From the NCBI RefSeq assembly GCF_030028105.1, contig NC_092374.1:176662057-176726056 (forward strand): a DNA stretch of 64,000 nt, read 5' to 3'. Within the stretch, counting starts at the first letter, position 1; every line of letters begins with the position of its first letter. This document shows, piece by piece, positions 1,546-37,215 of this stretch. The notes beneath the pieces are model-generated. The model had not been told where the DNA came from and ran no database searches. It was given only the letters and a program-made list of their open reading frames with translations. The translations under genes were made by a program, and so were the position numbers. This DNA is from Mobula birostris (Eukaryota).

Positions 1546-2097
1546 ACCCGTGGCATACTCTCTGTATTGTCAATGCATTTAGCAAGAGGATCAACAAAAA
1601 TAGTTGAAATGGTGTCAATATGGTATCTAACCATAAGAATACAACTCAAGAAGGTAAAGTATAGAAGCTGGGTTCTGCAACACAGAGGCATGGCAAGTTC
1701 CTATTTTTTTCTTATTCTAATGTAGAGAGTATACTGGAGAATTTTCCAAAGAACAAATGAAACAAACTGCTAATATAACCATTCTTGCATTCTTTTTTTT
1801 TCAGTGCAGTATTTTGTTCGTAAAGACTTGCAACAAATTACGACAAATCTAACAAAAGTAAATGCGACAGTTATCCAGACGGAAGTCAATGGAAATACAA
1901 ATCAAGGTCAGATTCAATTTGCAAACAAGTGTGTAATTGTGAAATGAACGTGCAAAACTAAAACACTTATTATCCGATAAATTATTCAGCTATCAAATGC
2001 ATTATATTAGCTGAAGCAGTCCATCCTAGATATTTGTTTATACACCTGGAGAGACCACACTTTCCAGTTGATAATGCTGAGATTGCCGTGGTATTAG
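1546..2097 (-). pseudogene. GPR139-like GPCR pseudogene psi1, exon 2 (TM1 end to TM5), frameshifted and 3' truncated
   Basis: Acceptor ctacag|ctaat at 2098/2097. Frame-hopping translation gives ANTTAISALSTGKCGLSRCINKYL, WITVAFTFVRFVVICCKSLRTKYCTEK (DRF to VRF) and SFYTLPS*VVFLWLDTILTPFQLFLLILLLNALTI, collinear with the intact gene at 7085-7977. Contains stops and frameshifts. Confidence 0.9.
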
Positions 2098-2194
2098 CTG
2101 TAGCCGTAGAGAAAAATGACAAAAATGATGTTACTTTGCAATGACAAAGAAATAAATTGCATTTCAATTACAACGTTTTCGCTTCATTATGGGT

Positions 2195-5100
2195 GAACGC
2201 CGAGAGAGGTGAAGGGAGCAGGAATTCAGTGCAGGGTCCCCTCAACAAAACGTATACCCTTTTGGATACTGCTGTGGGGGATAATCTATCTGGGCAAGGC
2301 AGAGGCAGCCAGACCAATAGAACTGCGGTTGGCTCTGAGCCTCGGAAGGGAAGGGTGAATTCCGGTGGAGCAATAGTCATAGGGGACTCAAAAGCTAGTG
2401 GGCATATAGAAGATTTTGCGTCAGCAAAAGAGACATCAGGAAAGTGTGTTATCTCCTGAATGCTCGGGTCCTGAATGTTTCTGAGCGGTTATGAGAAAGC
2501 GGAATGAAGATCGTTGATCTATACATAGAACTATGATGTTGCGGCCATGACAGATACTTGGATGCTCAGGGGCAGGAATGGCTGCTGAGTGTGCCAGGCT
2601 TCACATGTTTCCAAAACGACAGGGAAGAAGGCAAAAAAAGTGTGCGAGTTGCACTGGAAGTGAGGGATAGAATCACGGCTGCAGAAAAGGAGGAAGTCAT
2701 GGAGGGATTGACAGAAACAGGAAGTGGGCATTAACTCTACGGGGTGTTTTTATAGCACCCCTCCCCAATTGTAACACAGATATCATGGAGCAGATAGGGG
2801 GCAGATTCTGGAACTGTGCAATAATAATAGAGTTGTTGCAATGGGTGATTTAAACTTTCCTAATACTGAATGGCATCTCCTTAGAGCAAGGGGTTTCGTT
2901 AGAGTGGAGTTTGTTAGGTTTGTTCAGGAAGGCTTTCTGACGCATTTTGTAGATAGACAAACGAGAGGAGAGGCTGTACACGATCTGGTATTGGAAAACG
3001 AACCTGGCCAGGTGTCAGATCTCTCGGTGGGAGAGATTTTTGGAAGTAATGATCACAATTCAATCTCCTTTACCTTAGCATTGGAGAAAGACAGGAGCAG
3101 AAATGTTGGGAAACACTTACTTGGGGTCACAGGAAACATGATTAGGTAGGAACTTCGGAACATAAATTGGGAGCAGATGCTCTCAGCGAAATGCACAGCA
3201 GAAATGTGGCAAACGTTCAGGAGGACATTTGCATGATGTTCCGCATAAGTATATTCTAAAAACGAAGAAATACACAAATGGAAAAAAAATAGTACAACCG
3301 TGGCTGTCAAGGGAACTCCAAGCTAATGTAAAAGTAAAAGTGAGGGCATACAACAAAACAAAAACTAGCGGGAAGATGGAGGATTAGGAAGCTTTTAAAA
3401 ACCTATAGACAGCAATTAAAAGAATCATTAGGAGGGAAAAAATGAAATATGAAAGGAAACTAGCAAAACGTATCAAAGTGGATAGTAAAATTTTTCAAAT
3501 ATGTAAAGAAAAAGAGAGGTGAGAGTAGATAAATAGCAACGGGGGACGAGGAAATGACAGGTGCACTAAATGAGTATTTTGCATCAGTTTTCACTGTACG
3601 AGACACTAGAAATGTGCCAGATGTTATACTGCATGAAGGAAGAGAAGTGAGTGCAGTTACTATTATAAGGTGGTGGGTGCTCAAAAAACTGAAAGACTTC
3701 AACGTACTTAAGACATCCGAACCAGATAAAATGCACCCTAGGGTTCTGAAAGAGGTAGCGGTTGAGATCGTGGAGGTATTAGCAATTATCTTTCTAAAAT
3801 CATTCGACTCCAGCCTGGTCACTCCACTCTTTAATAAAGAAGGAAGGCAGCAGAAAGGAAATTATAGACCAGTTAGCCTGATGCAGTGTTTGGGAAGGTG
3901 TTGGAATGAGGTTATGGAGTACTTGGAGACACAGGACAAGATAGTACAAAGGCAGCATTGTTTCCACCAGTGAAAATCCTGCCTGATGAACCTGTTGGAA
4001 TTCTTTAAGGAGATCCCACATAGAACAGATAAAGGGGATATAGTGGATGTTGTATATGTGGACTTTCAGAAGGTTATTGACAAGGTGCCACACGTGAGGT
4101 TGTTTACCATGTTAAGAGCCTATGATATTAAAGGAAAGTCGCTGGCATGGTTAAAGCATTGGATAATTAGGCGGAGCCAGCAAGTCGGAATAAACATATC
4201 CTTTTCTGGCTGGCTGACAGTAACTAGTGGTGTTTCACAGGGGTCTGGGTTGGGAACGTTTTTTTATGCGTAACATCAATGATTTAGACAATGGAATAGA
4301 TGGCTTTGTTGCCAGTTTTGCAGATGTTACGAAGACTGATGGAGGAGCAGATATTGTTGATCACACAGGAAGGCTGCAGAAAGACTTTGAAAGATGAGGA
4401 AAATGGGCAGGCATGTTGCAAATGAAATGTAATGTTTTAAAATGCATGACCATGCTCTTTGGAGGAGAATTAAATGTGCAGTCTATTTTCACAACGGAGA
4501 AAACATCCAAAAATCTGAGGTGCAGAGGGGTTGGTGGGTCCTTGTCTAGAACACCCTAAAGGTAAATTGCACGTTGAGTCGGTGGTAAGGAAAGCATATG
4601 CATTGTTAGCATTCCTTTCAAGAGGTCTTGAATGGAAGAGCAGGGGTGTGATGTTCAGGCTCTATAAGACACAGGTGAAGCCGCACGGTGAGTATTGTGA
4701 ACAGTGTTGGGCTCCTCAGCTGAGAAAAAAATGTGCCGGCATTGGAGAGTTTTCGGAGGTGGTTTCGAAGGATGATTCCGGGAATAAAAGTGTTATTATA
4801 CGAGGAATGCTCGATGGCTCTGGGTCTGTACTCGCTGCAATTTAGAAGGATGATGGACGATGTCATTGAAACCTTTCGAATGTAAAACGGCCTAGACACA
4901 ATAGATGAGAAAAGGATGTTTTCCATGGTGGGGTGTCTAGGACAAGAGGACACATCCTCAGGATAAAGAGCTGTCCATTTAAAAGAGAGGTGTGGAGAAT
5001 TTCATTAGCCAGAGGCTAGTGAATTTGTGGAAATGTGTTAGCAGAGGCAGCTGTGGTGGCCAGATCGTTGGGTATATTTAAGACAGAGATTGTTTGGTTC

Positions 5101-5260
5101 TTGATTTGACATGGTATCAAAGGTTACGGGGGGAAGTCTGTGGAATGGCATTGAGGAGGGGAAACGGACCAGCTATGCTGGAATAGCGGAGTAGATTCGA
5201 TGGGTCCAATGGCCTAATTCTGTTCCTACGTCTGATGGAATTATGGTCTTATTGTCTTTA
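2195..5260 (+). mobile_element. CR1 LINE, decayed (ORF1 esterase remnant, APE endonuclease, RT, 3' tail), in the psi1 intron
   Basis: AIVIGDS esterase motif; MGDLNFP and GSNDHN endonuclease motifs; GNYRPVSL, VYVDFQKVIDKVPH and SGVSQGS RT motifs; ttatggtcttat tail. Confidence 0.9.
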
Positions 5261-5754
5261 TTTTGCTGAAGTTACATACAATATTAAAGTGAAGGTAGTC
5301 CACCACTACATATGTCAAGATGAGGAAGAGTGCACAAAACACCTTAAGCATGCACCGTGTGTCATTTATCATGCATGCTAGATACTGAGTTTACAAGGGT
5401 GTCGATTCTTTCCCAACCACTCTAAACACATCTTATTATGTGTTTGGATGTGTTTGGAGATAATCCCACTCGCCTACGTTTGACTAACTTCTGAAGCTAT
5501 CTTTAAAAATTAATTCATTCATGTTTTTCTTTCTTTTAATAAAATACAAAGTCAGCCCACACCTGTAGCAGACATAAACTACATATTGCATGATCAATAG
5601 CATAAAATGTGTTTTCAACAGGATGTCTTAATTACCAATGTACCAGAACTTTAATGTGAAACATTTTTCAGCTGTTTTCGTTGTTAGTTACTTAGATCAA
5701 CGACTCAACAAATACAAATATATATTATACAGATTGCATACAAGACTGGCTCAC

Positions 5755-5830
5755 CAGGAACACCGATTATTCCTGTTAAGGATAGGATAGTAAATGAGTG
5801 ATAGCATTAACTTTACAGGGCGTTCTACAT
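5755..5830 (-). pseudogene. GPR139-like pseudogene psi1, exon 1
   Basis: ATG at 5830; reads ...IYYPIL then, after a frameshift, IIGVP-G|gtgagc (donor at 5754). In-frame stop at codon 2. Same architecture as exon 1 of the intact genes. Confidence 0.8.
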
Positions 5831-7084
5831 TAGGGGCCAATTTTCGTTTCTGCTGCTTTAAGAGGTAAGGAAACCTATTGTTTTTATATTTACCCTTTAT
5901 TTATGTTCGGTTGAAAAATCCAGGGTGTCATGAGAACAGAGCTATAATTAGAAATATCCTGTGTCGTTGTTCCTCCGGAAAATAAAACGAGCTTTGTTTA
6001 CTGTCACTGATCCTGGCTATATTGAATCATTATGTTATCAATATTTTAATCTGGATTCCTCAGAAAATAGAATGGGTTAGGAGGTATCAATTACTCGTCA
6101 TACTTTCATTAAGTACAACAAATATGCTATTTCTTTTGGTTAAGTTCACTAAATAATAATTAATGTGCTCTTTCATCAGAAGAAATATAAATTACATTAT
6201 TATTGAAAATATATTCAAATACAGAGAAAGCAACATGCAATTCCACCAATTGCCCCTGGTGATTTACCAGTAAATTTGTGAGCTAAGAATATACAATAAT
6301 TAAATAAACAATCTAGTTCTATGCCTGGTATTCACATTAGAATCACCTATTTAATGTGAAGGTAATGCAAATTCTGAATTACTTCCAAAAGTGCAGAATG
6401 AGTTTTCAAATGCTCCATTTCTATGCCCATTATTTCCACTGTCTTCAACTGCATCGCCACCAGAAGCAAGTCTGAAATTAGCCAAACGTGATTTTAAGGT
6501 ATGCACTTCCGTTCAATCTGACATTGATAGTAGGTCATTAAACAAAATTATATCCGGTAAATTCCATCTTGCAGTTTTATCGAAGATTGCCAAGCCATAT
6601 AATCAGCCGTCTCTTGATTCTTTAACTATTTTTTTAATATACAATCCAATATGATTGACATTGCAAATATTTCAAGCTCTCGTCTTGTATTCTAGGCAAG
6701 TACTACATGTTAGTGAAACTCTCTTGGTCTCCGCCTTATATAAACCAAAGCATAGAACAGAAGTTCATTCTGGCATCATTGTTTGCAGTGACAAATGGGA
6801 GAATTTTCCCTGTAAAATTTAATGGGGTTAAGATTATGGCTGGTAATTAAAATGATGTAGTTTATGTAAACTCAGCAAATTCCCGAATGTCGCTTATATT
6901 TTGGCAGGATTTTTTTATAATATCATTTTAACAACACATCCCTCCGATATTTCTTAACACGGAATTCACTCAGTTGATACCTACTGAACATATAGGTCCG
7001 TGTAGCTTCATTAACGACTAAACAATTCATTTTTGCATGAGGATAATTCTCTTGAACTTATCAAATCGCAATTACTTCAATAAT

Positions 7085-7977
7085 TTAGAAAAAAAACACA
7101 AGAGGACTTTTCATTATCTTCTTCATTTCTTCCCTGAAGTTCTTTTGAGAGGCAGCGTAAATAAAGGTGTTGGTGCAAGTACTTAGGAATCGTAACTGGA
7201 AACCAGTTTCTTCTGCAATGGTGAATGGGTCATCGTAATCATATTTCATAAGTTTGTTATCGGTAAAATTAACTGAGATAAAGCAGGCAAAATTTACCAT
7301 CCATAACAGAATGAAGCTACTAGATATTGTGAGAAGTAAAATGACTGATTTCCTTCGGTTTTCCGTCTCTTGATCCATCTGGTTCTTCTCACTTTCGTTT
7401 CCTCGCAGTTTACTTCTGATTCTGTTAGCTCGCATAATGTGCTTTATCGTTAATGCGTTGAACAGAAGGATCAAAACAAATGGCAGAAAAGGAGTTAATA
7501 TTGTCTCCAACCATAAAAAAGCAGCCCAAATAGGTAAGGTATAGAAGGATGATTTTACAATACAGAACCATGATACATTGTCAATTATATCCCGAGGTTC
7601 TAGTAAGAAGTAGACTGGTATATTTTCTATAAAACATAGGAAGGAAACAACTGTTATAACCTTTGTTGCATTTTGTTCTGTGCAATAATTTGTTCGCAAT
7701 GACTGGTAACAAATCGCAACATATCGATCAAACGTAAAAGCTACAGTTAGCCAAACCGACAAATCAATAGCAACATAAATTAGGGCCAGATTAAGACGGC
7801 AAATAGGTGTGTAACTGAGGAATGAGTGTGGAAAAAATGCGTCTTTAATCTCGTAAAATACTGCGCCAAATATGAGATGCGTCAGGTCTCCTACAGCCAT
7901 CCACACCAAATAACGGGTAATGCATCTAGAGAGACCACACCTTCCAGTGGACAGAATAGCGATTGTTAGCACATTAG
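7085..7977 (-). CDS. GPR139/142-like orphan class A GPCR gene 1, exon 2 (of 2; spliced protein 320 aa)
   Basis: Acceptor ttttactgttcacag|CT at 7978/7977, phase 1. Open frame with TM1 end through TM7, GRCGLS in ICL1, TFDRY, Cys in YTPIC and WFC, CTNTFIY in TM7. Stop at 7085. Confidence 0.93.
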
Positions 7978-9275
7978 CTGTGAACAGTAAAAATGGAAAA
8001 AGTATTAAAACGCGTGTAACACCGAAAGGAGTAGAAATATTTTTTTTTCCATTCTTTCGCAACTTGGATTTATTCAACTGTTTCTTTATCCATAGCTCTC
8101 CAAATATATCGAATTAGTTATGACTTCAATAATATGTTTTGAAATGCGCCTTATTGCTCTGAATTTCTACGCAAGATAAGTGAAGTTAGAAAAGGCTACC
8201 TGAGACAGCAACCAGAAGAATGATACAGATGTGTGAAAAAAGTGTTAAATTCATACAATGTTACCGAAAATACAAGAACGACGTCTCCCATTGCAAAGAA
8301 AAACTGGTAGCCTTTTGAGAAAATTCCACAAAAGTGTACAAAAAATTCACATGGATGAGAAAATAACAGCCATGTGATCTGCATAAAATATTAATTATGT
8401 TGTTGCGTATTTTGATATTTCTCTTTCCTTCAAAATTTGAACACGTAGCAGTACTTCTGACACTGATACTTCAATAGTTCTACTGACAATAATTATAAGT
8501 CGAGATTCCAGAATGACGATATAGAACAGGTGATGTAAATGATATCTCTACATTCACAACAGTGAAGCCCCAGTGCCTTGCACTGAAATTGAAGTTTCTT
8601 ATCGATGTCTATCTACCCAGAACATATATCTACGCAAACTCAGCCGCATCTTTACATTAAAGAAGAAGTAAAACCATCACATATCAGTGAAGACATATGT
8701 ACTTTTATTCGTGGACTTAAGTACAGTGTTATAGGAAATAAAATATTTTACTATTGAATTATCATTGAAAGGGTAATTTATGGTTTTCTATCTCCTTTTG
8801 CTCGTTACAACAACGACTGGAAAAGTAGTAAGTTAGGGAACTGAGTTTCGTTCCGGCGCTGGTACCTGCCTGGTCATTCATGCAACTCACATCTAATCGA
8901 CTCTGCTGTAACCGTAGCGGAAGTATGATACTGACAATTAGTAAGAAAAGTGTCGCACTATGTTTTATTTCATTCAGCTGTATGCGCATAAAAAAGCACA
9001 AAGTACCAATTCACATGTTTTAGTATTACCTCGAGTTTATCCAAACAATTGTGATGTGATTGCTCAATGACATGCAAATACAACCAGGAATTAAAATTAT
9101 AATCGATTGCACTTACTTCAAATATAATTTTTTTTTCTTTTGGTTGATTGTAGCAGTACTGTATTTGCACAATCATCTTGACAGTCGCTTGAAATTGTTA
9201 ATATGTGTACGCTGCTGCAATGGCAAGTCAAACAAGAAAGCTTACATAGGTATTACGATCCTATAAGTGACTTAC

Positions 9276-9345
9276 CAGGAACGCCAATCATTATGAGAAT
9301 AGGATAATAAATCCGTTCTATCAGTAAATGTGCATAGAGTCCCAT
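9276..9345 (-). CDS. GPR139/142-like GPCR gene 1, exon 1 (70 nt)
   Basis: MGLYAHLLIERIYYPILIMIGVP-G|gtaagt. Phase 1 joins exon 2 in frame (70+893 = 963 nt). Confidence 0.88.
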
Positions 9346-10234
9346 GATAAGAGAGATGCTACCTTGTGAATGGTCCGATAGCAATTTCCTGCTTTGACGT
9401 TTGCGTCTTACTTGTATCTCTAGGAAATCTCTAGGGTAAAACGTCGATTTTTTTTTGTTATTATCCAGTCCCATGATTGCATGATTACGGCGTGTTTTGC
9501 CTATTGCCAATGATTATGACCGTTGCACTAATGTGTTAAAATGAACGTCTCAGTAATTAGTACGCAAGATCGGAGGTTTTGTAATTATGGTATGTTCCGT
9601 TCAAATGTGATTTATGGGCGAATTGGCTCTGTGTTGAATATGCTGGATTCTATTCCCGTTTATCAGATGAAAAAGACTGGTACTTGCAGATGCGTGTGAG
9701 ATCAATACAAGTTCGCAACACACAGCAGAAATTCTGATACTATTCAAGAACAAAATGTCTTGATGACTTGCTAAGAACATTGAAACAAACCAAATACATT
9801 ATCGTTTGTAAATACATTGTTTCTGAACCACGGTGTCCACTGGGAATCGTCAGTTAAAGCAAATTAAGCATAATAAATATTAGTGTAGAAGATTTGGAAA
9901 GAGTTCAGTTATGCTTAAAACAATGTATGTTAACCTATATGTCGCATACCAGATTGGAACCACGGAATAGACGTGTGAACCGTTTCAATTTACAGAACCG
10001 ATTACGGATCGTGAAGACCCATGTTTAATTCCATCACTATCAAACACCAAGCGTCAGCCATCGAACTAATGTATGAAACGCTGCAAAAATCAAAGATTCT
10101 ATTACTGCGATGGTTCGGTACCTTACCAAAGTAATGCTGTGCCGCAATTGGCCAATATTTTGCTTTTTATACTACAGAATGTATTCTTATGAATTCTATA
10201 AAAATGTCAAAGCGTAAAGTAAAAGTTATCGTCA

Positions 10235-10905: not shown

Positions 10906-11485
10906 TCTTTCCATAACTCTGAGGAAGTCAATCTCTGGCTCAACCAAATGTGTAAGGTGGAGATGCGAGCCCACCCCAAAACTCCTGCGTGATTTGTTAC
11001 CCTATTACCAATCTGTACCACGAAATTAGATAGATAGATAGATAGAAATCTGATTTGTTACCCTATTACCAATCAGTACCACGAAATTACAGACAGTACA
11101 CCACATACAATTAAACGATTTAGCCTTATAATTCTAATTTGACTACAGGATTAATGAAGAAAAAGCAAAAAAGATAAGGGCCCATTTTAATGATGCAGTC
11201 TAACGTGCACAAGTTGGAGCTCACGGTTTCCCATTCGCCGACCCTCTTCCGATCTCCCCAGCCTTTGTCAGATCATTGCTCCGCTTCAGTTCGAGTCCGA
11301 CAGCTTGTTCTCTCCGGCGTCTTCTCTCTTCATCTCCCGCCCAACAAAAGACCCAGGTCACCCCGGTGTCAGGAACACGGCACGAAAGCACACTTCCGTC
11401 ATTGGACGGCTCACATTCCAAGGTACCCGTTATCTATAACCGTAACGTAAACACTGCTTCTACAGAAAAAGCATTAAATTAGCAG
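10905..11485 (-). mobile_element. Solo LTR, family A (Gypsy-type), partial
   Basis: Shares gcgagcccacccc, acagacagtacacc and gtgcacaagttggagctc blocks with the LTRs at 42200-42834 and 44247-44894. Confidence 0.75.
10990..11089. repeat. 39-bp direct duplication flanking a (GATA)n insert
   Basis: 10990-11028 and 11051-11089 match at 38/39 positions, around gatagatagatagatagaaatc. Confidence 0.9.
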
Positions 11486-12830
11486 TGCAAAGGTCGGTAA
11501 GTTGATGGAGAGGATCCTGAGAGGCAGGAATTATGAACATTTGGAAAGGCATAATATGATTAGGAATAGTCAGCATGGCTTTATCAAAGGCAGGTCGTGC
11601 CTTACGAACCTGATTAAATTTTTTGAGGATGCGTCTAAACACATTGATGAAGGTAGAGCAGTAGATGTAGTGTATGTGGACTTTAGCAAGGCATTTGATA
11701 AGGTACTCCATGCAAGGCCTATTGAGTAAGTAAGGAGGCATGGGATCTAAGGGGACATTCGTTTGTGGATATAGAATTGGCTTGGCCACAGAAGGCAAAT
11801 AGTGGTTGTACACGGGTCGTATTCTGCTGGAGTTTGGTGACCAGTGGTGTACCTCGGGGATCTGTTCTCGGACCCCTTCTCTTGATTTTTATAAATGACC
11901 TAGATGAGGAAGTTCAGGGATGAGTTAGTAAATTTGCTGATGACACAAAGTTTGGGGGTGCTGTGGATAGTGTGGAGGGCTGTCAGAGGTTACAGCAGGG
12001 CATTGATATGATGCAAAACTGAGCGGAGAAGTGGCAGATGGAGTTCAACCAAGATAAGTGTGAAGTGATGCATTTTGGTAGGTCAAATATATTGGCAGAA
12101 TATAGTATTAATGGTAAGACTCTTTGCAGTGTGGAGTATCAGAGGCATCTTGTGGTCTGAGTCCATAGGACACTCAAAGGTGCTGCGCAGGTTGACTGTG
12201 TGGTTAAGAAAGTAAACGGTGCATTGCCCTTCATCAATCGTGCGATTGAATTGAGAAACGAAGAGGTAATATTGCAGATATATAGGTCCCTGGTCAGACC
12301 CTACTTGGAGTACTGTGCTCATTTCTGGTCGCCTCACTACAGCAAGGACATGGAAACCACAGAAAAGGTGCAGAGGAGATTTACAAGAACGTTGCCTGGA
12401 TTGGGGAGCATGCCTTATGAGAATGGGTTGGGTGAATGAAGGATGAGAGGTGAGCTGAAAGAGGTGTATACAATGATGAGAGGCATTGATCGTGTGGATC
12501 GTCAGAGGTTTTTTTCCCAGGGCTGAAATGGATAGCACGAGAGGGTACAGTTTTAAGTTGTTTGGAAGTAGGAACACAGGAGAGGTCAGGGGTAAGTTTA
12601 TTTTTTACGCATTAGAGAGCGGTGAGTGCGTGGAATGGGCTGCCGGCGATGGTGCTGGACATGGATAAGATATAGTCTTTTAAGAAACTCCTGGATAGGT
12701 ACATGGAGCTTAGAAAAATAGAGGACAATGATAACCCTAGGTAATTTCTAAGGTAAGAACATGTTATGCACAGCGTTGTGGGCAGAAGGGCGTATATTGT
12801 GCTGTAGATTTTCTATGTTTCTAAGTTTCT
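11485..12830 (+). mobile_element. CR1 LINE RT to 3' end fragment
   Basis: SQHGFIKGRSCLTNLIKFF, YVDFSKAFDKV, SLVRPYLEYC motifs; ttctatg tail. Confidence 0.9.
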
Positions 12831-12849
12831 ATGAAAACTTTCCCAGGAT

Positions 12850-13165: not shown

Positions 13166-13479
13166 ATGGTGAAAACTGCAATTTCTGAGATAAGAAGTAC
13201 TTTCTGGATCCAGTACATGTACGCATCTGACACCAGCAAAATTTAATTTTTAGATGCCTGTGAAAATGATCCAAGTACTCTAACCATCTGGAAGATTGTT
13301 GCTGTACCATGAAGGCAGCGGGCTTCACGCTGAATTGAAATAGACTCATGGGTGTAAAAAAGACAGTGAGCGTGTTGATTGATGATCCAGGGGAAACTGC
13401 CCGTAGCCTTTGCAAAGGCCCAGTTTGCCCGTCCAATAATTTCTATTGAGTCATAAATGCGGGGCATAGTATAATCACT

Positions 13480-14288: not shown

Positions 14289-14319
<31 letters not shown>

Positions 14320-23895: not shown

Positions 23896-25227
23896 TGTAT
23901 CACAGTGAGGCGTGGAGAACGGAACCAAATGTAAGACACAGACACTGAAGTACTAGGAACAGGACAGGGATGCAGGACCTGGGCTAGGACATGGACAAGA
24001 AAATGGGAAACTGGACAAGGAACTATGAACTAGGTGCCTAGATTGGGCTCCAAGCCAGAGACTGGAAAAGGACCCAGAACCTGGGTCTTGCCTCAGGCTC
24101 GGGCCCCAGAACCAGGCAAGGACATGACTTAACTACAGGACGGGAGGATGGGGTCTTGAGGCCTGAGCTTGGTGACAGGCTGGGGTCCTGAGGCCTGAGC
24201 TTGGTGACAGGCTGGGGTCCTGAGGCCTGAGCTTGGTGACAGGCTGGGGTCCTGAGGCCTGAGCTTGGTGACAGGCTGGGGTCCTGAGGCCTGAGCTTGG
24301 TGACAGGCTGGGGTCCTGAGGCCTGAGCTTGGTGACAGGCTGGGGTCCTGAGGCCTGAGCTTGGAGACAGGCTGGGGGCTTGCGTCTTGAGGCTGCAGGC
24401 TGGGGGCTTGCGTCTTGAGGCTGCAGGCTGGGGGCTTGGGTCTTGAGACTGCAGGCTGGGGGCTTGGGTCTTGAGGCTGCAGGCTGGGGGCTGGGGCCTT
24501 GGAATGCGGAGGCTGATAACTTGGAGCTGGAACTCGGAGACAGAGTGGGAACTGTACATCAAACATAGAGCCGGGACTTATCTTACGAAAAGCTGGTCTC
24601 CTCTTTAACACGACACCAAGGTGGGACAGGCCCATCCGTCGGGTAACGGCAGAACGGCCGGCCTTACCCAACAGAGGCAAAGACAAGACAAGACAAGACA
24701 GATCCAACCCCCGCCGGGTAACGGCGAAACGGTCTGACTTACCCACGGAGGCGAAGACAAGAAGCTACAAACACCAAGGAACGACAGACAGTTCCATCTC
24801 CACATTGGGGTTGCTCCGGGTCGCAGTTACGGCCAGCAACCTCGGCTGGCTACGGAAACAGCTGGATCCCTACCTAGCTCGGAGTGGGTGACGGCCAGTC
24901 AACTGGCCCAGGAAACGGACGAATCCATACCGCAAACACACCTCCGACTACTGATAGCAGGGCTCCATGAGGCGATGGTTACCGACGCAGCCTAAAGATG
25001 GCAAGTCACCGCTCTAGCCTTCCACCGGCAGGTTGCTCCCAGGGAATCTTGACAAGGCAAACCAGCAGCCCACACCCGACCCCAAGGCAACTTATTTTCC
25101 AAGCCATGGGAATCAGGTGCTTATGATTAACCCAACCAAAACAAAGAACAGCTGGAAGACCCGGAGTCCTGAGTCCACGGACCGGACCGTGAACCGGAAT
25201 GCGGACATCACGGACCGGACCATGGCA
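23896..25227 (-). mobile_element. Solo LTR, family B (Gypsy-type), containing a minisatellite
   Basis: TG...CA termini (tgtatcac...ccatggca) with gta immediately on both sides (possible agta TSD). Minus-strand start tgccatggtccggtccgtg. No pol sequence. Confidence 0.6.
24158..24492. repeat. Compound G-rich minisatellite: 7 x 32 bp followed by 4 x 28 bp
   Basis: gaggcctgagcttggtgacaggctggggtcct x6 plus one variant (24158-24380), then tg(c/g)gtcttgag(g/a)ctgcaggctgggggct x4 (24381-24492). Confidence 0.95.
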
Positions 25228-26208: not shown

Positions 26209-27131
26209 CTAAACAACCACACAATGCTCCCATAAGTTACCAGTACAGAAAAAAAGTACATATTTTATCTTATTCTTCAATTCCTCCCTAAACTTTTTCT
26301 GAGATATTGCATAAATGAAGGTGTTTGTACACGCGCTCAGGCACCGTAACATGTAGCCAGAATTTTCTGCAATTGCGAAAGAGTTGAACGTATCTCTTTT
26401 CATAAACTGGGTGTCTGTAAACTGTACGTAAATGAAACATGCCAGATTTACCAACCATAAGAGAACAAAATTGGCAGATATTGCAATTAGGAGAATAATC
26501 GATTTCCTTCTGTTACCAGATTCTTGATCATTCTGACAACTCTCCTTGTTGCTTGCTCGTAGTTTGCTTCTGACTCTGTTGGACATTACAATGTTCTTTA
26601 TGGTTATAGAATTAAGAATAATAATGGACAGATACGGTGTAAATGGGGTTATTGCTGTTTCTATCCATAAGTACGCAATCCAGGAGGGTCTGGTGTAGAA
26701 ACTTGCTTTCATGAAACATGACCATGGCATCTGGTTAATTATACGCCGAGGTTCAAATATAAAATAAATCGGAATATTTTGTATGATGCCGAAAATAAAC
26801 ACGATTGCTATAACCTTCGATGCATTCTTGGGAGTACAATATTTTGTTCGTAATGACTGACAGGAAATAGAAATAAATCGATCAAATGTGAAAGCGACAG
26901 TTAACCATACAGAAAAATCAAGAGAAATATACATCATTTGTATAATGAGACTACAAATAGGCGTGTAATTGAGGAACGAATATGGAAAATACGCTTCTTT
27001 CAGTTCATTCAACATTACATTACTTGTCAAAACCATTAGGTCAGCTACTGCCATCCATACCAGGTACATGATGATGCATCTGGAGAGACCGCATTTTCCA
27101 GATGTCAGGATGACAATTGCAACCAAATTAG
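26209..27131 (-). CDS. GPR139/142-like orphan class A GPCR gene 2, exon 2 (spliced protein 330 aa)
   Basis: Acceptor ttttcttttttggcag|CT at 27132/27131, phase 1. Open frame with GKCGLS, TFDRF, YTPIC and WSC cysteines, CTNTFIY. Confidence 0.93.
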
Positions 27132-28794
27132 CTGCCAAAAAAGAAAATATATTACTTTAGCAACGCAAATCAGTCGAGAATCTACTGCGTTCGGTTGTCA
27201 TAATTTTTCGCCAGTGTTTATTTTTAATTTTTACCGATTCAGTGCTAATGAATTAACTTCAACAATATTGAAACAATATTGAAAAATGATGGCTAATATA
27301 TTCTCATATTTTGTTCTAGAACCGAAATTCATAATTGGCTGTGCGGTGTACTTAAGAAAACAACAAAACGTGGAAAAATCATTTTCGTAGCAAATGTTAA
27401 AGATTTGTTCTCCATCTCTACCCCCGCAATCGATATTGTCAACATTTTCTTCGATTTAAGAAGTCCCAGTTTGCTGTGTTCCCGTCTGTCTAAACATACT
27501 GTATTTAACCAGGCTTAGAGACATCCATTTTCTTTTAACAGTGTTGGAATTTATTTTAAAAACCTGATTGCATCGCACTTTGTCTCCAGTGTTACACCAA
27601 ATTTGATATCAGAAATCCACTGCCATCAATTATTTCTGAATAAAAGCAATGCAGTTTTGAATGGACTGAGTGGTTATCTTTTGAAATACATTGGTTTCCA
27701 GTCTCGAAGGGGAATGTGTACTTTAATGTATTACCAAAAAGTGAATACAATATCCTGACATCTTAATATTTATTCAACTATCGTCCCCGTGAATCTGTTA
27801 CATTCTGATAAATATTTACAGGAAGTGGCTCAAATCACTTAGCAAATATGAATATACGTGAAAAACCTTCCTTCATGTGATCCCCATATACATTTATTTT
27901 GTATATATTAAAACGCAATTATAGTTAGAATGTCGCAATTCCACAGTTTGTTAAACTTATCACCTAGTTGGAAGTTTTCGTTGTATCTGACCGGTTAAGC
28001 TTGTGTTACTATTTTTTTTCAAATAGTAATGCAATGTAAATCTATCCGGTATCACAAAGTTGTTTTGAGTAATAGCTCAGGTTTCATCAAATTGAAAATA
28101 TTAGTTACTGCCAGGTGTATGCGTTAATCAGCTGCATTGCATGATTAAGATCGAACGTATTGAGTATTAAAATGAAAGAGGAATCACCGCCTTACAGGTT
28201 AGTTTCTACCATGACTTCGGAAATTGAAATTAGAAACTCACCTTAACGCTACGCACAATAATTAGTTAGGCACGGGATATTGACTTTCCCATAGGCAGAA
28301 AGTATTCACTGGCGTGTAAAGAAAACACGAAAAATGTACGAAATACTGCAGTCTTAAATCAATCCTTCATTTGAAGCGTGAAATCCGCCCTTCATAGAGC
28401 AGACTCTTATTTGGTAGGAGCGGAAACATGTTGCAGTTTGGACATGAATAAAATGAAATACATCATTTCGCCCGTTCATAAATACTTTCACATGTTTTCA
28501 TTTTGCTCTGTCAATGCAGTGTTTAAACTACCTAGAAACGATATTAATCAAATATCGCTGTGATGATTGTACGTTCTAGTGTCAATTGTTTGGCGACAAT
28601 TAAGTATAAAGTATAAAGTACTACCGAACCATTTACTCTTTGATGATAGCCAGTCAATGTAATTTATATATCGGAATGGCGTTAGCTGTAGCATTCCAAA
28701 GGAATTGAAAAACTCTTTTTCATCGACAGTTTTGTCGTTGATTGATACTGTCGAAAGTGATGCATGTTAAAATACATTTTTATAAACAACTTAC

Positions 28795-28864
28795 CTGGAA
28801 TCCCAATTGCGCCAAGCATTGGATAGTAAATTGCTTTTATCTGTTGGATTATATGTTTGTCCAT
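28795..28864 (-). CDS. GPR139/142-like GPCR gene 2, exon 1 (70 nt; alternative ATG 6 nt upstream)
   Basis: MDKHIIQQIKAIYYPMLGAIGIP-G|gtaagt. 70+923 = 993 nt, in frame. Confidence 0.88.
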
Positions 28865-29419
28865 AATCATAAAGAAGCTATGTTTCTGTACAGTCCAACA
28901 ACTACACGAACATCGCAATTTTTAAATTTGCTGTTACTTATGTTTCAGAGGACCTTCCAATGGGAATTGTCACATACGAGATTGAGATTACTATGATACA
29001 TCAATTGCGCAATGCTTTCTGCAGGCATATGAACACGGTTAGATTGATAAGCTGTACACAGGTATTTCATCATTTTCATTTGACAACAAATGAGAACTGA
29101 TGGTGTATCCAAATATTAGTTGAACATACCTTCACGGCATGATCTGTGGAGTAAAGGAAATTTGTTTTACTTTCGTTGTACCAAGTATTGTTCTCCGCCG
29201 CATTTTATGTCTGCCATGTATCACTGATACCTAAGTTCTGAAGCGTAATTTATCACATAATGTTAAACAGCAATAAAAATAAATCACTCGAATACTGTGG
29301 CGCACGTTGAAAATTTCTCAGATATGTTTAAGAAACGCTATCCTTGAAAAACACACTAAAGCGACAAACAAGCATATAAAAAAAGAGAACTATTTAAAAG
29401 GGTTATATTCGTTTGCAGA

Positions 29420-30000
29420 TGCATGCATATGATAATGCAGATGGAATAAACAATGATCTTTTAAGAATTGGTAGATTCTGACGCTGTATCGCATGACTGG
29501 AAAATTGGAAATATTACTCCGCTATTTAAGAAGGGTAGAAGGCAGCAGAAAGGAATCTAAAGTCTTGTTATCTTGACATCAGTGGTTGGGAAGTTGTTGG
29601 AATCGATTATTAGGGATGGGATTACGGAGTACCCGGAGGCACATGATACGATAGGCCAAAACCATCATGGGTTCCTGAAAGGAAACTCCTGCCTAACTAA
29701 CTACTACAATTTTTTGAGGAAGTTACAAGCAGGGTAGACCAAAGAGATGCAGTGGATGCGGTGTACTTGGCTCTTCAGAAGGCTTTTGACAAGGTGCCGC
29801 ACATGAGGCTGCTGAGCAAGATAAGTGCAAATAGAATTACTGGTGACTTACGAGCATGAGTGGAGCATTGGCTGATCGGCAAAAATATACAGAGTGGGAA
29901 TAAAGAGATCCTATTCTGGCTGACTGCTGGTTTTCAGTGGAGTTCCACATGGATCGGTGTTGGGACCACTGCTGCTTACAATGATATTGTCAATATTAAA
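29420..30000 (+). mobile_element. CR1 RT fragment
   Basis: HGFLKGNSCLTN...F; ttcagaaggcttttgacaaggtgccgcac (FQKAFDKVPH). Confidence 0.8.
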
Positions 30001-30906
30001 CCGATCCGCAGTGCCAAAAAGGTTGGGGACCCCTGTCATAGCTGATTAAGTTTAAGTTCAAGAATAATTGTCATTCAACCATACGTGAGTACATATATGA
30101 GGATCATGTGCAATGTTAGTTTTGTAATTTCCAGTGAGGAATAGATATGTAATCAGATTAAGGGAATAAATAAAATAATACGGTTGTTGTCAAGGGCGAT
30201 TTCATATGCGGTACTTTAAATTCGTTTTGTCCAGCAGCGTTTGTTAAATTGCGTTTAACAAAGACTTATTGTTTACTAAAGACATTTGGCTGCCCCCACT
30301 ACCTCCAATCGCACAGTCATCTTACTGGAAGATTATTATCCCTCTCAACCCCATTTTCCTGCTTTTTTTCGACGGAGCATTTGACGCTCTTACTATTCAT
30401 GAAACCTCCGCTTTCAGTATATCCAACGACTTACCATCCACAGCCGTTTGTGTGAATAAATTTCATGGTTTTCTCCCTTTTGGCTAAAGAAATTTCTCTT
30501 TATTTTTGTTCTAAGTGAATGTCCCCCAATTCTCGGCCTGTGTCCGGTGGTCCGAATACTCCTCCACTATAAGACTCATTCTCTCTCCATCCTCTCATTC
30601 ACTTTACGATAGGTTTCAATGAGATTGCCCACCCCATTCTTCTGAGGTCCCGCGAGTACAGGCCCAGAGACAGAAAATGGTCCTCATATGTTAACCCATT
30701 CATTCCCGCAATCATTCTCATAAGCTGCTGTAGACACCTTCCAATGTCAGCACATTTTTCCTAATAAATTTAAGTGACCATTCTGCTAATTTGACGATGT
30801 CTGTCTGCAGAATCTCTGCTTCCTCAACACTACCTGCTGTGCCACCTATCTTCGGATCATCGGGAAACTTGGTAATAAAGCCACAATGCTAGCATCCAAA
30901 TTATTA

Positions 30907-33900
30907 CATAGAAAACATGGAAAACGTAGAAAATAGGTGCAGGAGTAGGCCATTCGGCCCTTCGAGCCTGCATCGCCATTCAGTATGATCATGGCTGATC
31001 ATCCAATTCAGAACCCTGTACCAGCCTTCCCCCCATACCCCCGATCTCTTTAGCCACAAGGGCAATATCTAACTCCCTCTTAAATATAGCCAATGAACTG
31101 GCCTCAACTGTTTCCTGTGGCAGAGATTTCCACAGATTCACCTCTCTCTGTGCGAAGAGGTTTTTCCTAATCTCGGTCCTAAAAGGCTTCCCCTTTATCC
31201 TCAAACTGTGACCCCTCGTTCTGGACTTCCCCAACATCGGGAACAATCTTCCTGCATCTAGCCTGTCCAATCCCTTTAGGATTTCATACGTTTCAATAAG
31301 ATCCCCCGTCACATCTTCTAAATTCCAACGAGTATACGCCTAGTTGATCCAGTCTTTCCTCATATGAAAGTCCTGCCATCCCAGGATTCAATCTGCTGAA
31401 CCTTCTTTGTACTCCCTCTATGGCAAGGATGTCTTTCCTCAGATTAGGGGACCAAAACTGCACACAATACTCCAGGTGTGGTCTCACCAAGGCCTTGTAC
31501 AACTGCAGTAGTACCTCCCTGCTCCTGTACTCGAATCCTCTTGCTATAAATGCCAGCATACCATTCGCCTTTTTCACTGCCTGCTGTATCTGCAGGCCCA
31601 CTTTCAATGACTGATGTATAAGGACACCCAGGTCTCGTTGCATCTCCACTTTTCCTAATTGGCCACCATTCACATAATAATCTGTTTTCCTGTTTTTGCC
31701 ACCAAAGTGAATAACCTCACATTCATCCACATTAAATTGCATCTGTCATGACTTTGCCCACTCATCTAACCTATCCAAGTCACCCTGCATCCTCTTAGCA
31801 TCCTCCTCACAGCTAACACTGCCACCCAGCTTCGTGTCATCCGCAAACTTGGAGATGCTGCATTTAATTCCCTCATCTAAGTCATTAATATATATTGTAA
31901 ACAACTGGGGTCCCAGCACTGAGCCTTGCGGTACCCCACTAGTTACTGCCTGCCATTCTGAAAAGGTCCCTTTTATTCCCACCCTTTGCTTCCTGTCTGC
32001 CAACCAATTCTCTATCCACATCAATACCTTACCCCCAATACCGTGTGCTTTAAGTTTGCACACTAATCTCCTGTGTGGGGCCTTGTCAAAAGCCTTTTGA
32101 AAATCCAAATATAACACATCCACTGGTTCTCCCCTATCCACTCTACTACTTACATCCTCAAAAAATTCTATGAGATTCGTCAGACATGATTTTCCTTTCA
32201 CAAATCCATGCTGACTTTGTCCGATCATTTCACCGCTTTCCAAATGTGCTGTTATCACATCTTTGATAACTGACGCTAGCATTTTCCCCACCACCGATGT
32301 TAGGCTAACCAGTCTATAATTCCCCGGTTTCTCTCTCCCTCCTTTTTTAAAAAGTAGGGTTACATTAGTCACCGTCCAATCCTCAGGAACTAGTCCAGAA
32401 TCTACAGAGTTTTGAAAAATTATCACTAATGCATCCACTATTTCTTGGGCTACCTCCTTAAACACTCTGGGATGCAGACCATCTGGCCTTGGGGATTTAT
32501 CTGCCTTTAATCCCTTCAATTTTCCTAACACCACTTACCTACTAAATGTATTTCCCTCAGTTCCTCCATCTCACTGGACCCTCTGTCCCCTACTATTTCC
32601 GGAAAATTGTTTATGTCCTCCTTATTGAAGACAGAACCAAAGTAGTTATTCAATTGGTCTGCCATATCCTTGCTCCCCATAATCAATTCACCTGTTCCTG
32701 TTTGTCAGGGACCTACATTTGTCTTTACCAATCTTTTTCTTTTCACATATCTATAAAAGCTTTTACAGTCAGTTTTTATGTTCCCTGCCAGTTTTCTCTC
32801 ATAATCCTTTTTCCCTTTCCTAATTAAGCCCTTTGTCCTCCTCTGCTGGACTCTGAATTTCTCCCAGTCCTCAGGTGAGCCACTTTTTCTGGCTAATTTG
32901 TATGTTTCTTCTTTGGAATTGATACTATCCCTAATTTCCCTTGTCAGCCACGGGTGCACTACCTTCACTGATTTATTCTTTTGCCAAGCTGGGATAAACA
33001 ATTGTTGTAGTTCATCCATGCGATCTTTAAATGCTTGCCATTGCATAACCACCGTCAACCCTTTAAGTGTCATTTGCCAGTCTATCTTAGCTAATTCACG
33101 TCTCATACCTTCAAAGTTACCCTTCTTTAAGTTCAGAACCTTGGTTTCTGAATTAATGATGTCACTCTCCATCTTAATGAAGAATTCCACCATATTATGG
33201 TCACTCTTACCCAAGGGGCCTCTCACGACAAGATTGCTAATTAACCCTTCCTCATTGCTCAATACCCAGTCTAGAATAGCCTGCTCTCTAGTTGGTTCCT
33301 CAACATGTTGGTTCAAAAAACCATCCCACATACATTCCAAGAAATCCTCTTCCTCAGGACCCTTACCAATTTGGTTCACCCAATCTATATGGAGATTGAA
33401 GTCACCCATTATGACTGCTGTTCCTTTATTGCACGCATTTCTAATTTCCTGTTTAATACCACCCCCAACCTCACTACTACTGTTAGGTGGCCTGTACACA
33501 ACTCCCACCGGAGTTTTCTGCCCCTTAGTGTTATGCAGCTCTACCCATACCAATTCCACATCCTCCCGGCTAATGTCCTGCCTTTCTATTGCGTTAATCT
33601 CCTCTCTAACCAGCAATACTACCCCATCTCCTTTTCTTTCATGTCTATCCCTCCTGAATATTGAATATCCCTGAATGTTGAGCTCCCAACCTTGGTCACC
33701 CTGGAGCCATGTCTCTGTGATCCCAACTATATCATATTCATTAATAACAATCTGCACTTTTAATTCATCCACCTTGTTACGAATGCTCCTTGCATTGACA
33801 CACAAAGCCTTCAGGCTCGCTTTTACAACACTCTTAGCCCTTATACAATTATGTTGAAAAGTTGCCCTTTTTGATTTTTGCCCTGGATTTGCCGGCCTGC

Positions 33901-34926
33901 CACTTTTACTTTTCACCTTACTACTTTTTGCTTCTACCCTCATTCTACACCCCTCTGTCTCTCTGCACTTGTTCCCATCCCCCTGTTGTGAATTAACCTC
34001 CTCTCTCCTAGCCTCTTTAATTTCATTCCCACCCGCCAACCATTCTAGTTTAAAGTCACCTCAGTAGCCCTCGCAAATCTCCCCGCCAGGATATTGGTCC
34101 CCTAGGATTCAAGTATAACCCGTCCTTTTTGTACAGGTCACACCTGCACCAAAAGAGGTCCCAATGATCCAAAAACTTGAATCCTTGCCCCCTGCTCCAA
34201 TCCCTCAGCCACGCATTTATCCTTCATCTCATTACATTCCTACTCTCACTGTCGCGTGGCACAGGCAGTAATCCCGAGATTACTAATTTTGCGGTCCGTT
34301 TTGTCAACTCCCTTCCTAACTCCCTGTATTCTCCTTTCAGGACCTCTTCCCTTTTCCTACCTATGTCATTGTTACCTATATGTACCACGACCTCTGGCTC
34401 CTTACCCTCCCACTTCAGGATATCTTGAACGCGATCAGAAATATCCCGGACCCTGGCATCATGGAGGCAAACTACCATCCGGGTCTCTGGACCGCGTCCA
34501 CAGAATCGCCTATCTGACCCCCTTACTATCGAGTCCCCTATTACAACTGCCCTCATCTTCCTTTCCCCACCCTTCTGAGCTACTGGGCCGGACTCTGTGC
34601 CGGAGGCACGGCCACTGTCGCTTGCCACAGGTAAGCCGTCCCTCCCAACAGTACTCAAACAGGAGTACCTATTGTCAGGGGGCCAGCCACCGGGATACTC
34701 TCTATTACCTGACTCTTCCCCTTCCCTCTCCTAACCGTGACCCACTTGTCTGCCTCCCGTGGCCCCGAAGTGACCACCTGCCTGTAACTCCTCTCTATCA
34801 ACTCCTCACTCTCCCTGACCAGACGAAGGTCATCGAGCTGCAGCTGCAGTTCCCTAACGCGGTCCCTCAGGAGTTGCATCTCGGCGCACCTGGCGCAGAT
34901 GTGGTCGTCCGGGAGGCTTGGAGACA
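30907..34926 (-). mobile_element. Young, near full-length CR1 LINE (5' truncated ORF1 with zinc-finger remnant and SGNH esterase; ORF2 APE plus RT broken by a few frameshifts)
   Basis: ORFs 34655-34927 (CARC..LRDRVRELQ), 34224-34658 (VVIGDSIVRG, VHIGNND), 32705-34039 (ITETW, MGDFN, SDH), 31746-32534 (FQKAFD, QGSVLGP, FADD), 31293-31742, 30989-31312. ttctat-like tail. Confidence 0.95.
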
Positions 34927-35010
34927 TATTACGTGAAAAGAAGCGGTCTGTACACCAAGCTCTGAGGAATATAACTCGTCACAGTCAGGCAACCAGAGAG
35001 CTTGTTCATA

Positions 35011-35080
35011 ATGTTGCTTCCTCGTTTACTGATTCGGTAGAAGTTTTACTGCTCGATTTTTGCGCATTTTGAACCATCTG
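35011..35080 (+). pseudogene. GPR139-like pseudogene psi3, exon 1
   Basis: Exactly 70 nt: MLLPRLLIR*KFYCSIFAHFEPS-G, positionally matching M..LLI..IYYPIL..IGVP-G. In-frame stop and degraded donor. Confidence 0.55.
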
Positions 35081-35556
35081 GGTAGTTTTAACGTTGGACT
35101 GCGGTACTGAACAAGAGCATTTGCAACAAGAAGAGTATTTTCGTTTCATTAAAAATAACAGGCAGTTGGCTATTAATTCTAACAAACGGAGTGATGTTCG
35201 GGAAGTGTTCCAGAGAAGTTGATGTTAACATCGCAATACTGTACTTTATACTTTTCTAAAGTCATGATTATAAATTAGCAGCCAATCCTCAATAAGATGG
35301 CAGATCATTGAATCGCCAGCGAGAATGCTGACTATTTGGCAATATTGCCTGAGTTTGATACATGGATTTATCTTCATGCAAATTAAAGTGACCGCCAAGT
35401 GAAATTGGCCGCTGACAATCGTTGAATCCACTTTTGACATAAATGAATTTCTTCCCTTATACAAATAAAAGAATGTTAAACGAAGTATGAAGGGCTTAGA
35501 CTAAAAGCTTTAAATGAAGGTTTGACTGAGGTATTTATTCTTGTGTATTCAAACAG

Positions 35557-37215
35557 TCAATTTATGATTTTCTGCATTTACAGATAGTCTTCGGCAATTG
35601 TTATTCTATCTCGTGGGAAGCGCAGTCATTCAAAATGCATCACTCATTATCATTCGTCGGCTGTGCAAATCCAGGGAACACAATGTCTGGCCCCGCCAAA
35701 CCTGTAAGATTGAGGCACGAGCCCACCCCAAAAACCCCTGTTCGTGTGGATGCTGCCTGATTCGTTACCCTGTTACAGATAAGTATCACAAAATAACAGA
35801 CAGTACACCCCACACAATTTTTTTTTTTAAAAAAAGCTTTATACTTCTTAATTTGACTAAAGGTTTAGTAACGAAAGAACAAAACAAGAAAAGGGCCCAT
35901 TTGAATGAAACAGTCTAATGTGTACAAATTGGAGTTCACGGTTTCACTTCGCCGATCCTCCTTCAATCTCAGCCCGGGCTTCGTCGAATCACAGCCCCGC
36001 TCCGGGTCGAACCCTACGACCTCTTCTCCCGGGCGTCTTCTCTCTTCATCTCCATAACAAAAGCCCCAAAACCAACCTTAAATTCTTCTATCTCTTATCT
36101 TCAACAGTAACCCAAACAGGCAGCTTGCACTGAACAGCACAAATTAAATACAGAGTAGCATAACAGTAACGAAATATGAACCAGGGCATTACAGTTGCAA
36201 TGGCTGTGGAAGATCGACTGGTGATAACAACACTTGCTGTAATATTATATGAGGTGAATGATGTTATGTTTTGTAAGTTCAAAACATTAAACTAATTCAA
36301 AGGAAGACAAAGGAGTACGAAAAAAGTGGGTGCAGCTTCGTCTTTAAGTGGTTCCCTCGTATATCCGGTAATAGCGTGATGACGTATGCAATTAATGTAT
36401 TTATACATATAATCCATAATGAATTATTTAAACGAACAGGAAAGTTTAATCCACCACGATATACTCGAGATTACGCAAGAATAACTAAAATATTAAATAC
36501 ACAACAAATAGCGTGTTTTCCATGTGCAGCCTCAAGATCACTATTTTTTTCAGCCTTAGATTGCTCCATGTGATCGATTGATTACCATTTGTTGACAGAA
36601 CCTGAGAACACTCTACAGTATTACGCTGAGGAAACTGCAGCTGTGGTTATAATGATTAAAGTTGGATTTAGTTTCGTACAAAATATGCCAATTAACTTTG
36701 AAAATGAACACTTGGGAACTTATTCGCAATGCTCTCTGGTTTTGCAAAGAGGTCTCATCCGTATAGTTTACCAACATAGATTGCATACTTTCTTTTAGAC
36801 ATCGCCTTAACAACTTTTGAGCCATTTTCATTGGCTGTGCTCTTTAATGCTCTGACCATCCAGCATATATTATGGGGCAATAAGCTCAGAAAGTGACATG
36901 AGGAGACAGAATTAGGTAAGCTTGCAATGGTCCACAGTATATGAACCGCAGGAATTCGATGATATTACTTCTCTCTATCTCTAGCTGTTTTACTCTGTTT
37001 TGGCTGGTAACATCTATGCAGAATTTCCAGAGATTTAGGGTACGCTCACAGATTGTAATGATTTAATCGATATCATGGAACATATTGTGCATATGCTTCA
37101 GTGTCTCAGTTCGTATACGGATTTACTTTAAGTGATGGCTCGGGTTAAATTGAGAAAAAAAAACATTGGTGAAAGCTATTAAAAACCCCTTCAATTTATT
37201 TTTCAAACCGTGGGA
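35557..37215 (+). pseudogene. GPR139-like pseudogene psi3, exon 2, interrupted by a solo LTR and a ~225-bp insert
   Basis: aaacag|TC AAT TTA (VNL); AIVILSRGKRSHSKCITHY | LTR | VAMAVEDRLVITTLAVILYEV; PMCSL..ALDCSM; DRLITIC*QNLRT; QNMPI; ALWFC; LFNALTIQHI; NRRNSMILLLSISSCFTLFWLV; HMLQCLSSYT. Confidence 0.9.
35652..36193 (-). mobile_element. Solo LTR, family A, inserted in the psi3 coding exon
   Basis: Shares blocks with the 42.2/44.2-kb LTRs and ends cagggcattaca. GPCR codons stop at TAT C and resume at GTT GCA ATG. Confidence 0.85.

Follow-up and report, generated by a model that had tools for sequence, protein, structure and literature searches.

A multicopy family of GPR139-related receptors in cartilaginous fishes, viewed from a gene cluster of Mobula birostris, and its possible role in chemosensation

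GPR139 and GPR142 are receptors that are activated by L-Trp and L-Phe, and the cartilaginous fishes, whose genes are the subject here, are famous for their sense of smell. Although they have many olfactory neurons, these fishes possess the smallest olfactory receptor repertoire known for any vertebrate group, averaging 43.8 genes (PMC10869828). Arg6.51, a residue reported to occur only in GPR139 and GPR142, binds the carboxylate of the amino acid and plays a critical part in recognizing the ligand, and proline is found at position 7.50 in 94% of class A receptors (PMC8807744). We analyzed a stretch of 64,000 nucleotides from Mobula birostris (NCBI RefSeq assembly GCF_030028105.1, contig NC_092374.1, positions 176,662,057 to 176,726,056 of the forward strand), referred to here as the window and numbered from its first letter, which holds two intact GPR139-like receptor genes (A and B) and two pseudogenes of the same kind.

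The assignment of A and B to one gene family is close to certain. By its annotated sequences, this family is found across the cartilaginous fishes and is large and multicopy. It is a birth-and-death family with a constant signaling face and a ligand-facing half that changes after duplication and is then fixed within subfamilies.

Receptor genes and relics in the window

A and B are intact two-exon class A G protein-coupled receptors (GPCRs) with an N terminus of about four residues. Both whole genes lie on the minus strand (A, 9345-7085; B, 28864-26209). A search for ATG-initiated phase-1 exons upstream of each exon 2 gave one matching candidate per gene, at 9276 to 9345 for A and at 28795 to 28864 for B; each is 70 nt long, and the two align with each other. 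Exon 1 of A encodes Met, 22 further residues, and the first base of an Ala codon, which amounts to about 4 extracellular residues and most of the first transmembrane helix (TM1). The N termini of A and B match those of annotated shark proteins, e.g., P0004, residue for residue. In exon 1 of B, an in-frame ATG lies 6 nt further upstream and would make the exon 76 nt long. The introns, both in phase 1 (7978 to 9275, 1298 nt, in A; 27132 to 28794, 1663 nt, in B), have the donor G/GTAAGT and an acceptor that consists of a pyrimidine tract followed by CAG/CT. Exon 2 was delimited in each gene by the open reading frame (ORF), the acceptor, the spliced translation, and the match to Pfam 7tm_1 (PF00001); it runs in A from the end of TM1 to the stop codon (7085 to 7977; E = 1e-19) and in B occupies 26209 to 27131 (E = 4e-16). 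A pyrimidine-rich block (consensus approximately CTTCTCTCT, then 4 to 6 nt, then ATG) is found upstream of A, B, and two skate genes. On the minus strand of the window it is located at 9346-9366 and 28865-28885, just before the two start codons, and it could be an element of the 5' untranslated region or the end of an upstream intron.

The spliced proteins have 320 (A) and 330 (B) residues and are 56% identical, with 67% identity in DNA. The motifs G(R/K)CGLSRCI in intracellular loop 1 (ICL1), WLTVAFTFDR at the end of TM3, and CTNTFIY in TM7 are the same in both. The activation switches are also present in both proteins: N1.50, D2.50, the disulfide Cys pair between C3.25 and extracellular loop 2 (ECL2), DRY/DRF, P5.50, W6.48, and N7.49...Y7.53. 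Pro6.50 and Pro7.50 are absent. Identity between A and B is lower in the outward-facing half (50%) than in the inward-facing half (62%; Fisher p=0.03). The AlphaFold model of the 68%-identical P0004 has a mean predicted local distance difference test score (pLDDT) of 87.5 and contains seven helices, an ECL2 hairpin, and helix 8, and in fold searches many class A receptors are matched with template-modeling scores of 0.7-0.8. A and B both belong to a clade of batoid sequences only, in which B pairs with a stingray protein, and a full-length protein of Hemitrygon akajei is 72% identical to B.

ICL1 (protein positions 34-42; approximately 7945-7915 in exon 2 of A) reads R-G-x-C-G-L-S-K/R-C-I-T-R-Y-L, with two near-invariant cysteines, the first of which is also present in distant single-copy relatives. 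Few parts of the family are as strongly conserved (0.63 bits), and this unusual conservation suggests a shared intracellular partner or a lipid modification. The N termini of A and B are too short for glycosylation. An N-glycosylation site in ECL1 (positions 78-80) that is conserved in the family is N-Y-T in B and has been lost in A (S-Y-T), which carries N-V-S in ECL2 and N-F-T at the border of TM6 and ECL3.

A profile built from 76 family members and run over all six frames of the window identifies four exon-2 loci, namely, A, B, and two pseudogenes. The exon-2 relic of the first, P1 (1520 to 2107, minus strand), was pieced together from tblastn matches in three frames and matches the family profile over 1550-2107 (E = 4e-22). 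It has 70% DNA identity with gene A and spans TM1 to the end of TM5, the 3' third being missing; damage to it includes at least three frame changes, several stops, and replacement of the DRY Asp by Val. The exon-1 relic of P1, located by a motif scan and by aligning the DNA with the first exons of A and B, lies 3.6 kb further upstream (approximately 5755 to 5830, minus strand). IYYPIL and the GT donor are retained there, the frame is displaced by an insertion of 4 nt, and the sequence of the original start region is ATG-TAG. In the second pseudogene (35573-37200, plus strand) there are several in-frame stops and changes of frame, and a dispersed repeat of 543 nt (35651 to 36193) divides it in two. 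The repeat separates a piece covering TM1 and ICL1 (35573 to 35650; family-profile positions 21-46, also found by tblastn) from one that runs from TM2 to the C terminus (36194 to 37200; profile positions 48-73 and 106-319 in three frames, with tblastn and a three-frame reading in support). No exon 1 was found upstream of this pseudogene. The three other copies of the repeat in the window, at 11050-11355, 42217-42477, and 44259-44540, are 65-76% identical to it.

A preliminary description of the window, made from its letters, had claimed five loci, and it probably counted one pseudogene fragment as a separate locus. Weak tblastn matches at approximately 12.1 kb and 15.8 kb (E 0.2-0.9) were considered as a fifth locus and were dropped, as the family profile gives them no support. 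The same description correctly recognized two intact genes with a 70-nt exon 1 and a phase-1 intron, the approximate half identity of their products, and the conserved motifs of ICL1, the TM3 end, and TM7. The variable N terminus that it reported is seen between A and B but not in the family, where exon 1 is well conserved.

Extent of the family and its relation to GPR139

A search with gene A returned 1631 proteins at E<=1e-5, and the top-scoring 120 belong without exception to sharks, skates, and rays. Counting distinct paralogs within these best 120 matches alone, and thus as a lower bound, there are 21 in Heterodontus, 23 in Heptranchias, 17 in Pristiophorus, and 17 in Rhinoraja. An exhaustive search gave 101 clusters at 50% identity with E<1e-30, and the ESM Atlas holds 26 + 18 = 44 clusters with at least 50 members. 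Subfamilies down to 36-45% identity are also elasmobranch, and Callorhinchus has a member. Most of these proteins bear the automatic name “probable G-protein coupled receptor 139,” with stray sex peptide, FMRFamide, galanin, and vasopressin receptor-like names among them. Our literature searches found no paper on the family, and the catshark sensory papers among the results do not mention it. The earlier suggestion that a family is hidden under automatic GPR139-like names is consistent with both observations.

Tandem arrangement extends beyond Mobula. In the skate Leucoraja, a 21-kb locus contains two tandem genes approximately 9-11 kb apart with the same 70-nt exon 1, and in Heptranchias perlo four paralogs are found on one 2.1-Mb contig (JAYJKY010000536.1). 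Together with the two dead loci among the four in the window, these arrays agree with the tandem arrays with pseudogenes that had been proposed. The 70-nt exon 1 is present in three of the four Heptranchias paralogs (sites L004:2067, L005:2061, and L006:3034). The 301-residue NCBI models P0063 and P0072 of this species begin inside exon 2 and omit the conserved exon 1 located approximately 0.9 kb upstream; in the paralog P0064, too, this exon 1 precedes exon 2. For many members of the family, the annotation probably lacks about 23 residues. Logan contigs of P0001, P0023, and P0055 were considered as possible transcripts and were rejected because they read through the intron, which indicates that they are genomic.

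The closest receptor of solved structure is human GPR139, although it matches only weakly (33 bits for exon 2 of A and 50 bits for full-length P0004), and the neuromedin U and vasopressin receptors follow at 35 bits. Distant kin of the family, at approximately 30% identity, also have GPR139 as their best match of solved structure, at 53-66 bits, and so tie the family to it more firmly. In fold searches GPR139 has the highest sequence identity (22-25%), although these searches could not separate it from other peptide-type receptors, all of which have E of ~1e-9. The family shares with GPR139 (7VUG, 7VUH, 7VUI, 7VUJ, and 9M42) the TM1 motif YY..G.PAN.LT..ILS, a residue other than proline at 7.50 (Phe in GPR139 and Thr in the family), and Asn at 5.58. 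Thus, three features of the wider GPR139-like clade are found in it: non-proline 7.50, Asn 5.58, and YYP..G.PAN in TM1.

That the nearest solved relative is GPR139 and that rare motifs are shared with it would favor a role like that of GPR139, in which the receptors serve the brain or endocrine system, respond to amino acids or neuropeptides, and were multiplied by segmental duplication with no sensory function. We consider such a neuromodulatory role quite unlikely. GPR139 is single copy and highly conserved, whereas the family has dozens of copies per genome, and no vertebrate neuropeptide receptor family is known to us that numbers dozens to hundreds of copies with pseudogenes making up half. 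The loss of Arg6.51, which GPR139 needs for ligand recognition, also argues against it. In the window's subfamily Arg6.51 is replaced by Asn, Thr, or Ile and Pro6.50 by Val; none of its 68 members has Arg or Lys at 6.51, and A and B carry Asn. The contact residues His5.43, Asn7.38, and Glu3.32 of GPR139 are likewise not retained in the family. The pharmacology of GPR139 should consequently not be transferred to the window genes, and with the anchor missing from all 68 sequences, the amino acid sensing that the preliminary description inferred by analogy with GPR139 is weakened. Ligands are probably not recognized in the GPR139 way.

The expanded family is monophyletic (96/92) in a phylogenetic tree that does not include true GPR139 or GPR142. 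Its sister (100/100) is a group of amphibian and sturgeon proteins annotated as “probable GPR139” (the P0222 group), and a gnathostome-wide group (the P0226 group, with members in coelacanth, catshark, sturgeon, teleosts, amphibians, and reptiles) is the next clade out (91/86). The P0222 proteins have the same WLTVAFTFDR at the end of TM3 as the family, and their best matches after their own orthologs are the shark and ray proteins. However, they are encoded by one gene per genome, are 66-74% identical across amphibians, and retain Pro6.50 and Lys6.51. The P0226 proteins are approximately 30% identical to the family and have the same TM1 and TM7 motifs, but they too are single copy, their gene tree follows the species tree, and Arg6.51 is invariant in them. 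The two single-copy groups retain Arg or Lys at 6.51, as does an amphioxus-like relative, and within the expanded family such a residue survives only in two basal elasmobranch subfamilies (P0405 and P0158).

Sharks carry a conserved GPR139-like gene of the P0226 group in addition to the expanded family. Together with the tree, this indicates that the window genes are not one-to-one orthologs of a known receptor, as is also evident from their low scores to GPR139 (33-50 bits), the dozens of paralogs per species, and their own clade. The family arose from a GPR139-related gene that is still single copy in amphibians and sturgeon. The single-copy sister genes are the natural candidates for neuromodulatory receptors, and their separate retention is a further point against such a role for the expanded family.

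Ligand-pocket divergence and selection

Variability in the ligand pocket was measured at 35 canonical class A pocket positions that were chosen before looking at the data. Across 28 subfamily representatives (39% mean identity), the pocket has an entropy of 2.38 bits, versus 1.7 at other helix positions (p=3e-5). The relation is reversed in the sister groups: in the amphibian group the pocket is almost invariant and is the most conserved part (0.18 versus 0.60 bits; p=6e-6), and in the gnathostome-wide group it is also conserved (0.67 versus 1.15 bits). With normalization for overall divergence, the pocket excess relative to the two single-copy groups has p=7.5e-8 and 1.3e-9. Among the 30 sites with the largest excess, 17 and 13 in the two comparisons are pocket positions, where approximately 3 are expected, and position 6.51 is at the top of the list. 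The intracellular face (ICL1 and the inner ends of TM3, TM6, and TM7) is conserved throughout. This reversal between the expanded family and its sisters is large despite the limits of the statistics, and a pocket that is the most diversified part across subfamilies is difficult to reconcile with neuromodulatory receptors that had simply been multiplied.

The age of the duplicates matters for selection as measured by the ratio of nonsynonymous to synonymous divergence (dN/dS). Old pairs (among them A versus B, A versus a relative with 75% identity, and the two tandem genes of the skate) have a dS of 1-3, which is saturated, and a dN/dS of 0.1-0.25, indicating purifying selection only. The low ratios imply that the intact genes are maintained, and they would also be expected of neuromodulatory receptors. 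The four young Heptranchias paralogs, on the other hand, have a dS of 0.09-0.15 and an overall dN/dS of 0.42-0.84, with 0.62-1.16 in the outer half versus 0.26-0.64 in the inner half. Variable sites among them are concentrated in the outer half (44/132, versus 27/173 in the inner half; p=0.0004), although an excess in the pocket alone (12/35) was not significant (p=0.13). The extracellular-facing variability noted in the preliminary description is therefore seen between A and B, among young paralogs, and across subfamilies, but it does not extend to the pocket within the window's own subfamily, whose most variable segments are ICL3, ECL3, and the tail.

Pocket diversification and fast-evolving young copies would also fit host-pathogen dynamics. 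Receptors of the family could be displayed on leukocytes, mast cell-like cells, or epithelia and sense peptides or microbial or host products as an immune or barrier repertoire, in the manner of the formyl-peptide, chemokine, and MRGPR receptors. The predicted fold, which is nearest to those of peptide-type receptors (CCK, TRH, galanin, neurotensin, and chemokine), is in line with this possibility, and by analogy the overall pattern also matches some immune or somatosensory receptor expansions. To our knowledge, however, almost every very large tandem expansion of class A receptors in vertebrates is sensory, and we regard an immune use as unlikely. Linkage to immune loci would not speak for such a use, since odorant receptor clusters of mammals are likewise found beside the MHC and within the TCR-alpha locus.

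It could also be argued that most copies have no function, having been carried along by segmental duplication in repeat-rich DNA, with the intact frames being recent survivors that have yet to decay. Half of the window loci are dead, the cluster is full of debris from long interspersed nuclear elements (LINEs) and dispersed repeats, and dN/dS among the young Heptranchias paralogs reaches 0.84. However, A and B are intact at a dS of approximately 1.5 with a dN/dS of approximately 0.2, all of their activation switches are in place, and the counterpart of B in another ray is full length at 72% identity. Even in the young copies the inner-half ratios given above reflect constraint. This explanation is very improbable and is already hard to hold.

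The remainder of the window contains several repeats. A LINE remnant (31746 to 34039, minus strand) with endonuclease and reverse transcriptase ORFs (Pfam Exo_endo_phos, Exo_endo_phos_2, and RVT_1) sits between gene B and the plus-strand pseudogene. A GC-rich minisatellite at 24145-24501 is made up of 32-nt units (7.3 copies matching at 98%) and of 28-nt units (4.8 copies). The long Pro/Gln/Ser-rich frames that it creates on the minus strand (24038-24746) are unlikely to be genes. At 51673-52604 a 465-nt unit occurs twice head to tail, and the 99% identity points to tandem duplication in very recent times. A second family of dispersed repeats has copies, as much as 87% identical, at 38145-38600, 59453-59886, and 11709-12136; an ORF at 38599-39159, beside one of them, has no Pfam match. 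GC content is 0.48-0.51 at 60000-64000, compared with approximately 0.35-0.40 over the receptor genes.

Candidate functions and significance

The history that we favor begins with a single-copy GPR139-like ancestor, which would have duplicated in cartilaginous fishes into tandem arrays. New duplicates change fastest on their outward half, and old paralogs are held by purifying selection. Each receptor may bind a different small extracellular ligand while all of them signal through a shared intracellular partner, so that the family as a whole would be a sensing repertoire. As judged from the genes themselves, external chemosensation, in olfactory, taste, or solitary chemosensory cells, is tentatively the most likely use. 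A stronger proposal would make this family the seventh kind of vertebrate chemoreceptor and the principal odorant or tastant repertoire in sharks and rays, derived from a GPR139-like orphan receptor that lost Arg6.51 and afterwards diversified its pocket; this is possible but doubtful.

The chemosensory interpretation draws on analogy with the TAAR, OR, V1R, and T2R families and with the rodent expansions of MRGPR and FPR. Like the family described here, they belong to class A and form lineage-specific tandem arrays rich in pseudogenes, with raised dN/dS in young duplicates. They also combine a variable ligand pocket with a constant signaling face, as is seen here between subfamilies. They differ from it in having no sequence kinship with it beyond class A.

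A number of observations weigh against a chemosensory repertoire. OR, TAAR, V1R, and T2R genes have a single coding exon, in contrast to the two of this family, and a search of the 600 nt upstream of exon 1 in five genes revealed no O/E-type sites. In catshark sensory organs, no GPCR is among the 50 most olfactory-specific genes (PMC11979771), which is weak evidence because single receptors are expressed at low levels. The entropy comparisons take no account of phylogenetic non-independence, and their pocket list and helix numbering were derived from conserved anchors and motifs and the helices of the model, not from coordinates. Within the window's subfamily (68 sequences), the pocket is no more variable than other outer-helix positions (1.27 versus 1.27 bits; p=0.85), and 20 of the 35 pocket residues are the same in A and B, which is close to the average for the protein. 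Several charged pocket residues are conserved in this subfamily, as would also be expected of receptors with a neuromodulatory role, and the pattern of the pocket within the subfamily also fits a family with one class of ligand.

The genes are automatically annotated in many genomes, so the sequences themselves are not new. What appear to be undescribed in the literature searched are the family as an entity, its origin from a gene with a single-copy ortholog in amphibians and sturgeon, and the remodeling and diversification of its pocket. The automatic names of its members are misleading. If the receptors are expressed in leukocytes, they would constitute an unrecognized immune receptor repertoire.

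With chemosensation as the preferred reading, the family is a concrete and testable candidate for the missing chemoreceptors of sharks and rays. Should it prove to be their main chemoreceptor repertoire, it would explain how large olfactory organs are found together with only about 40 canonical olfactory receptor genes. The two groups of animals also offer a natural experiment in which one lineage of orphan receptors has a frozen pocket in a single-copy gene in amphibians and an exploded set of genes with a remodeled pocket in sharks and rays. This contrast could help to find the ligands of GPR139-like orphan receptors generally.

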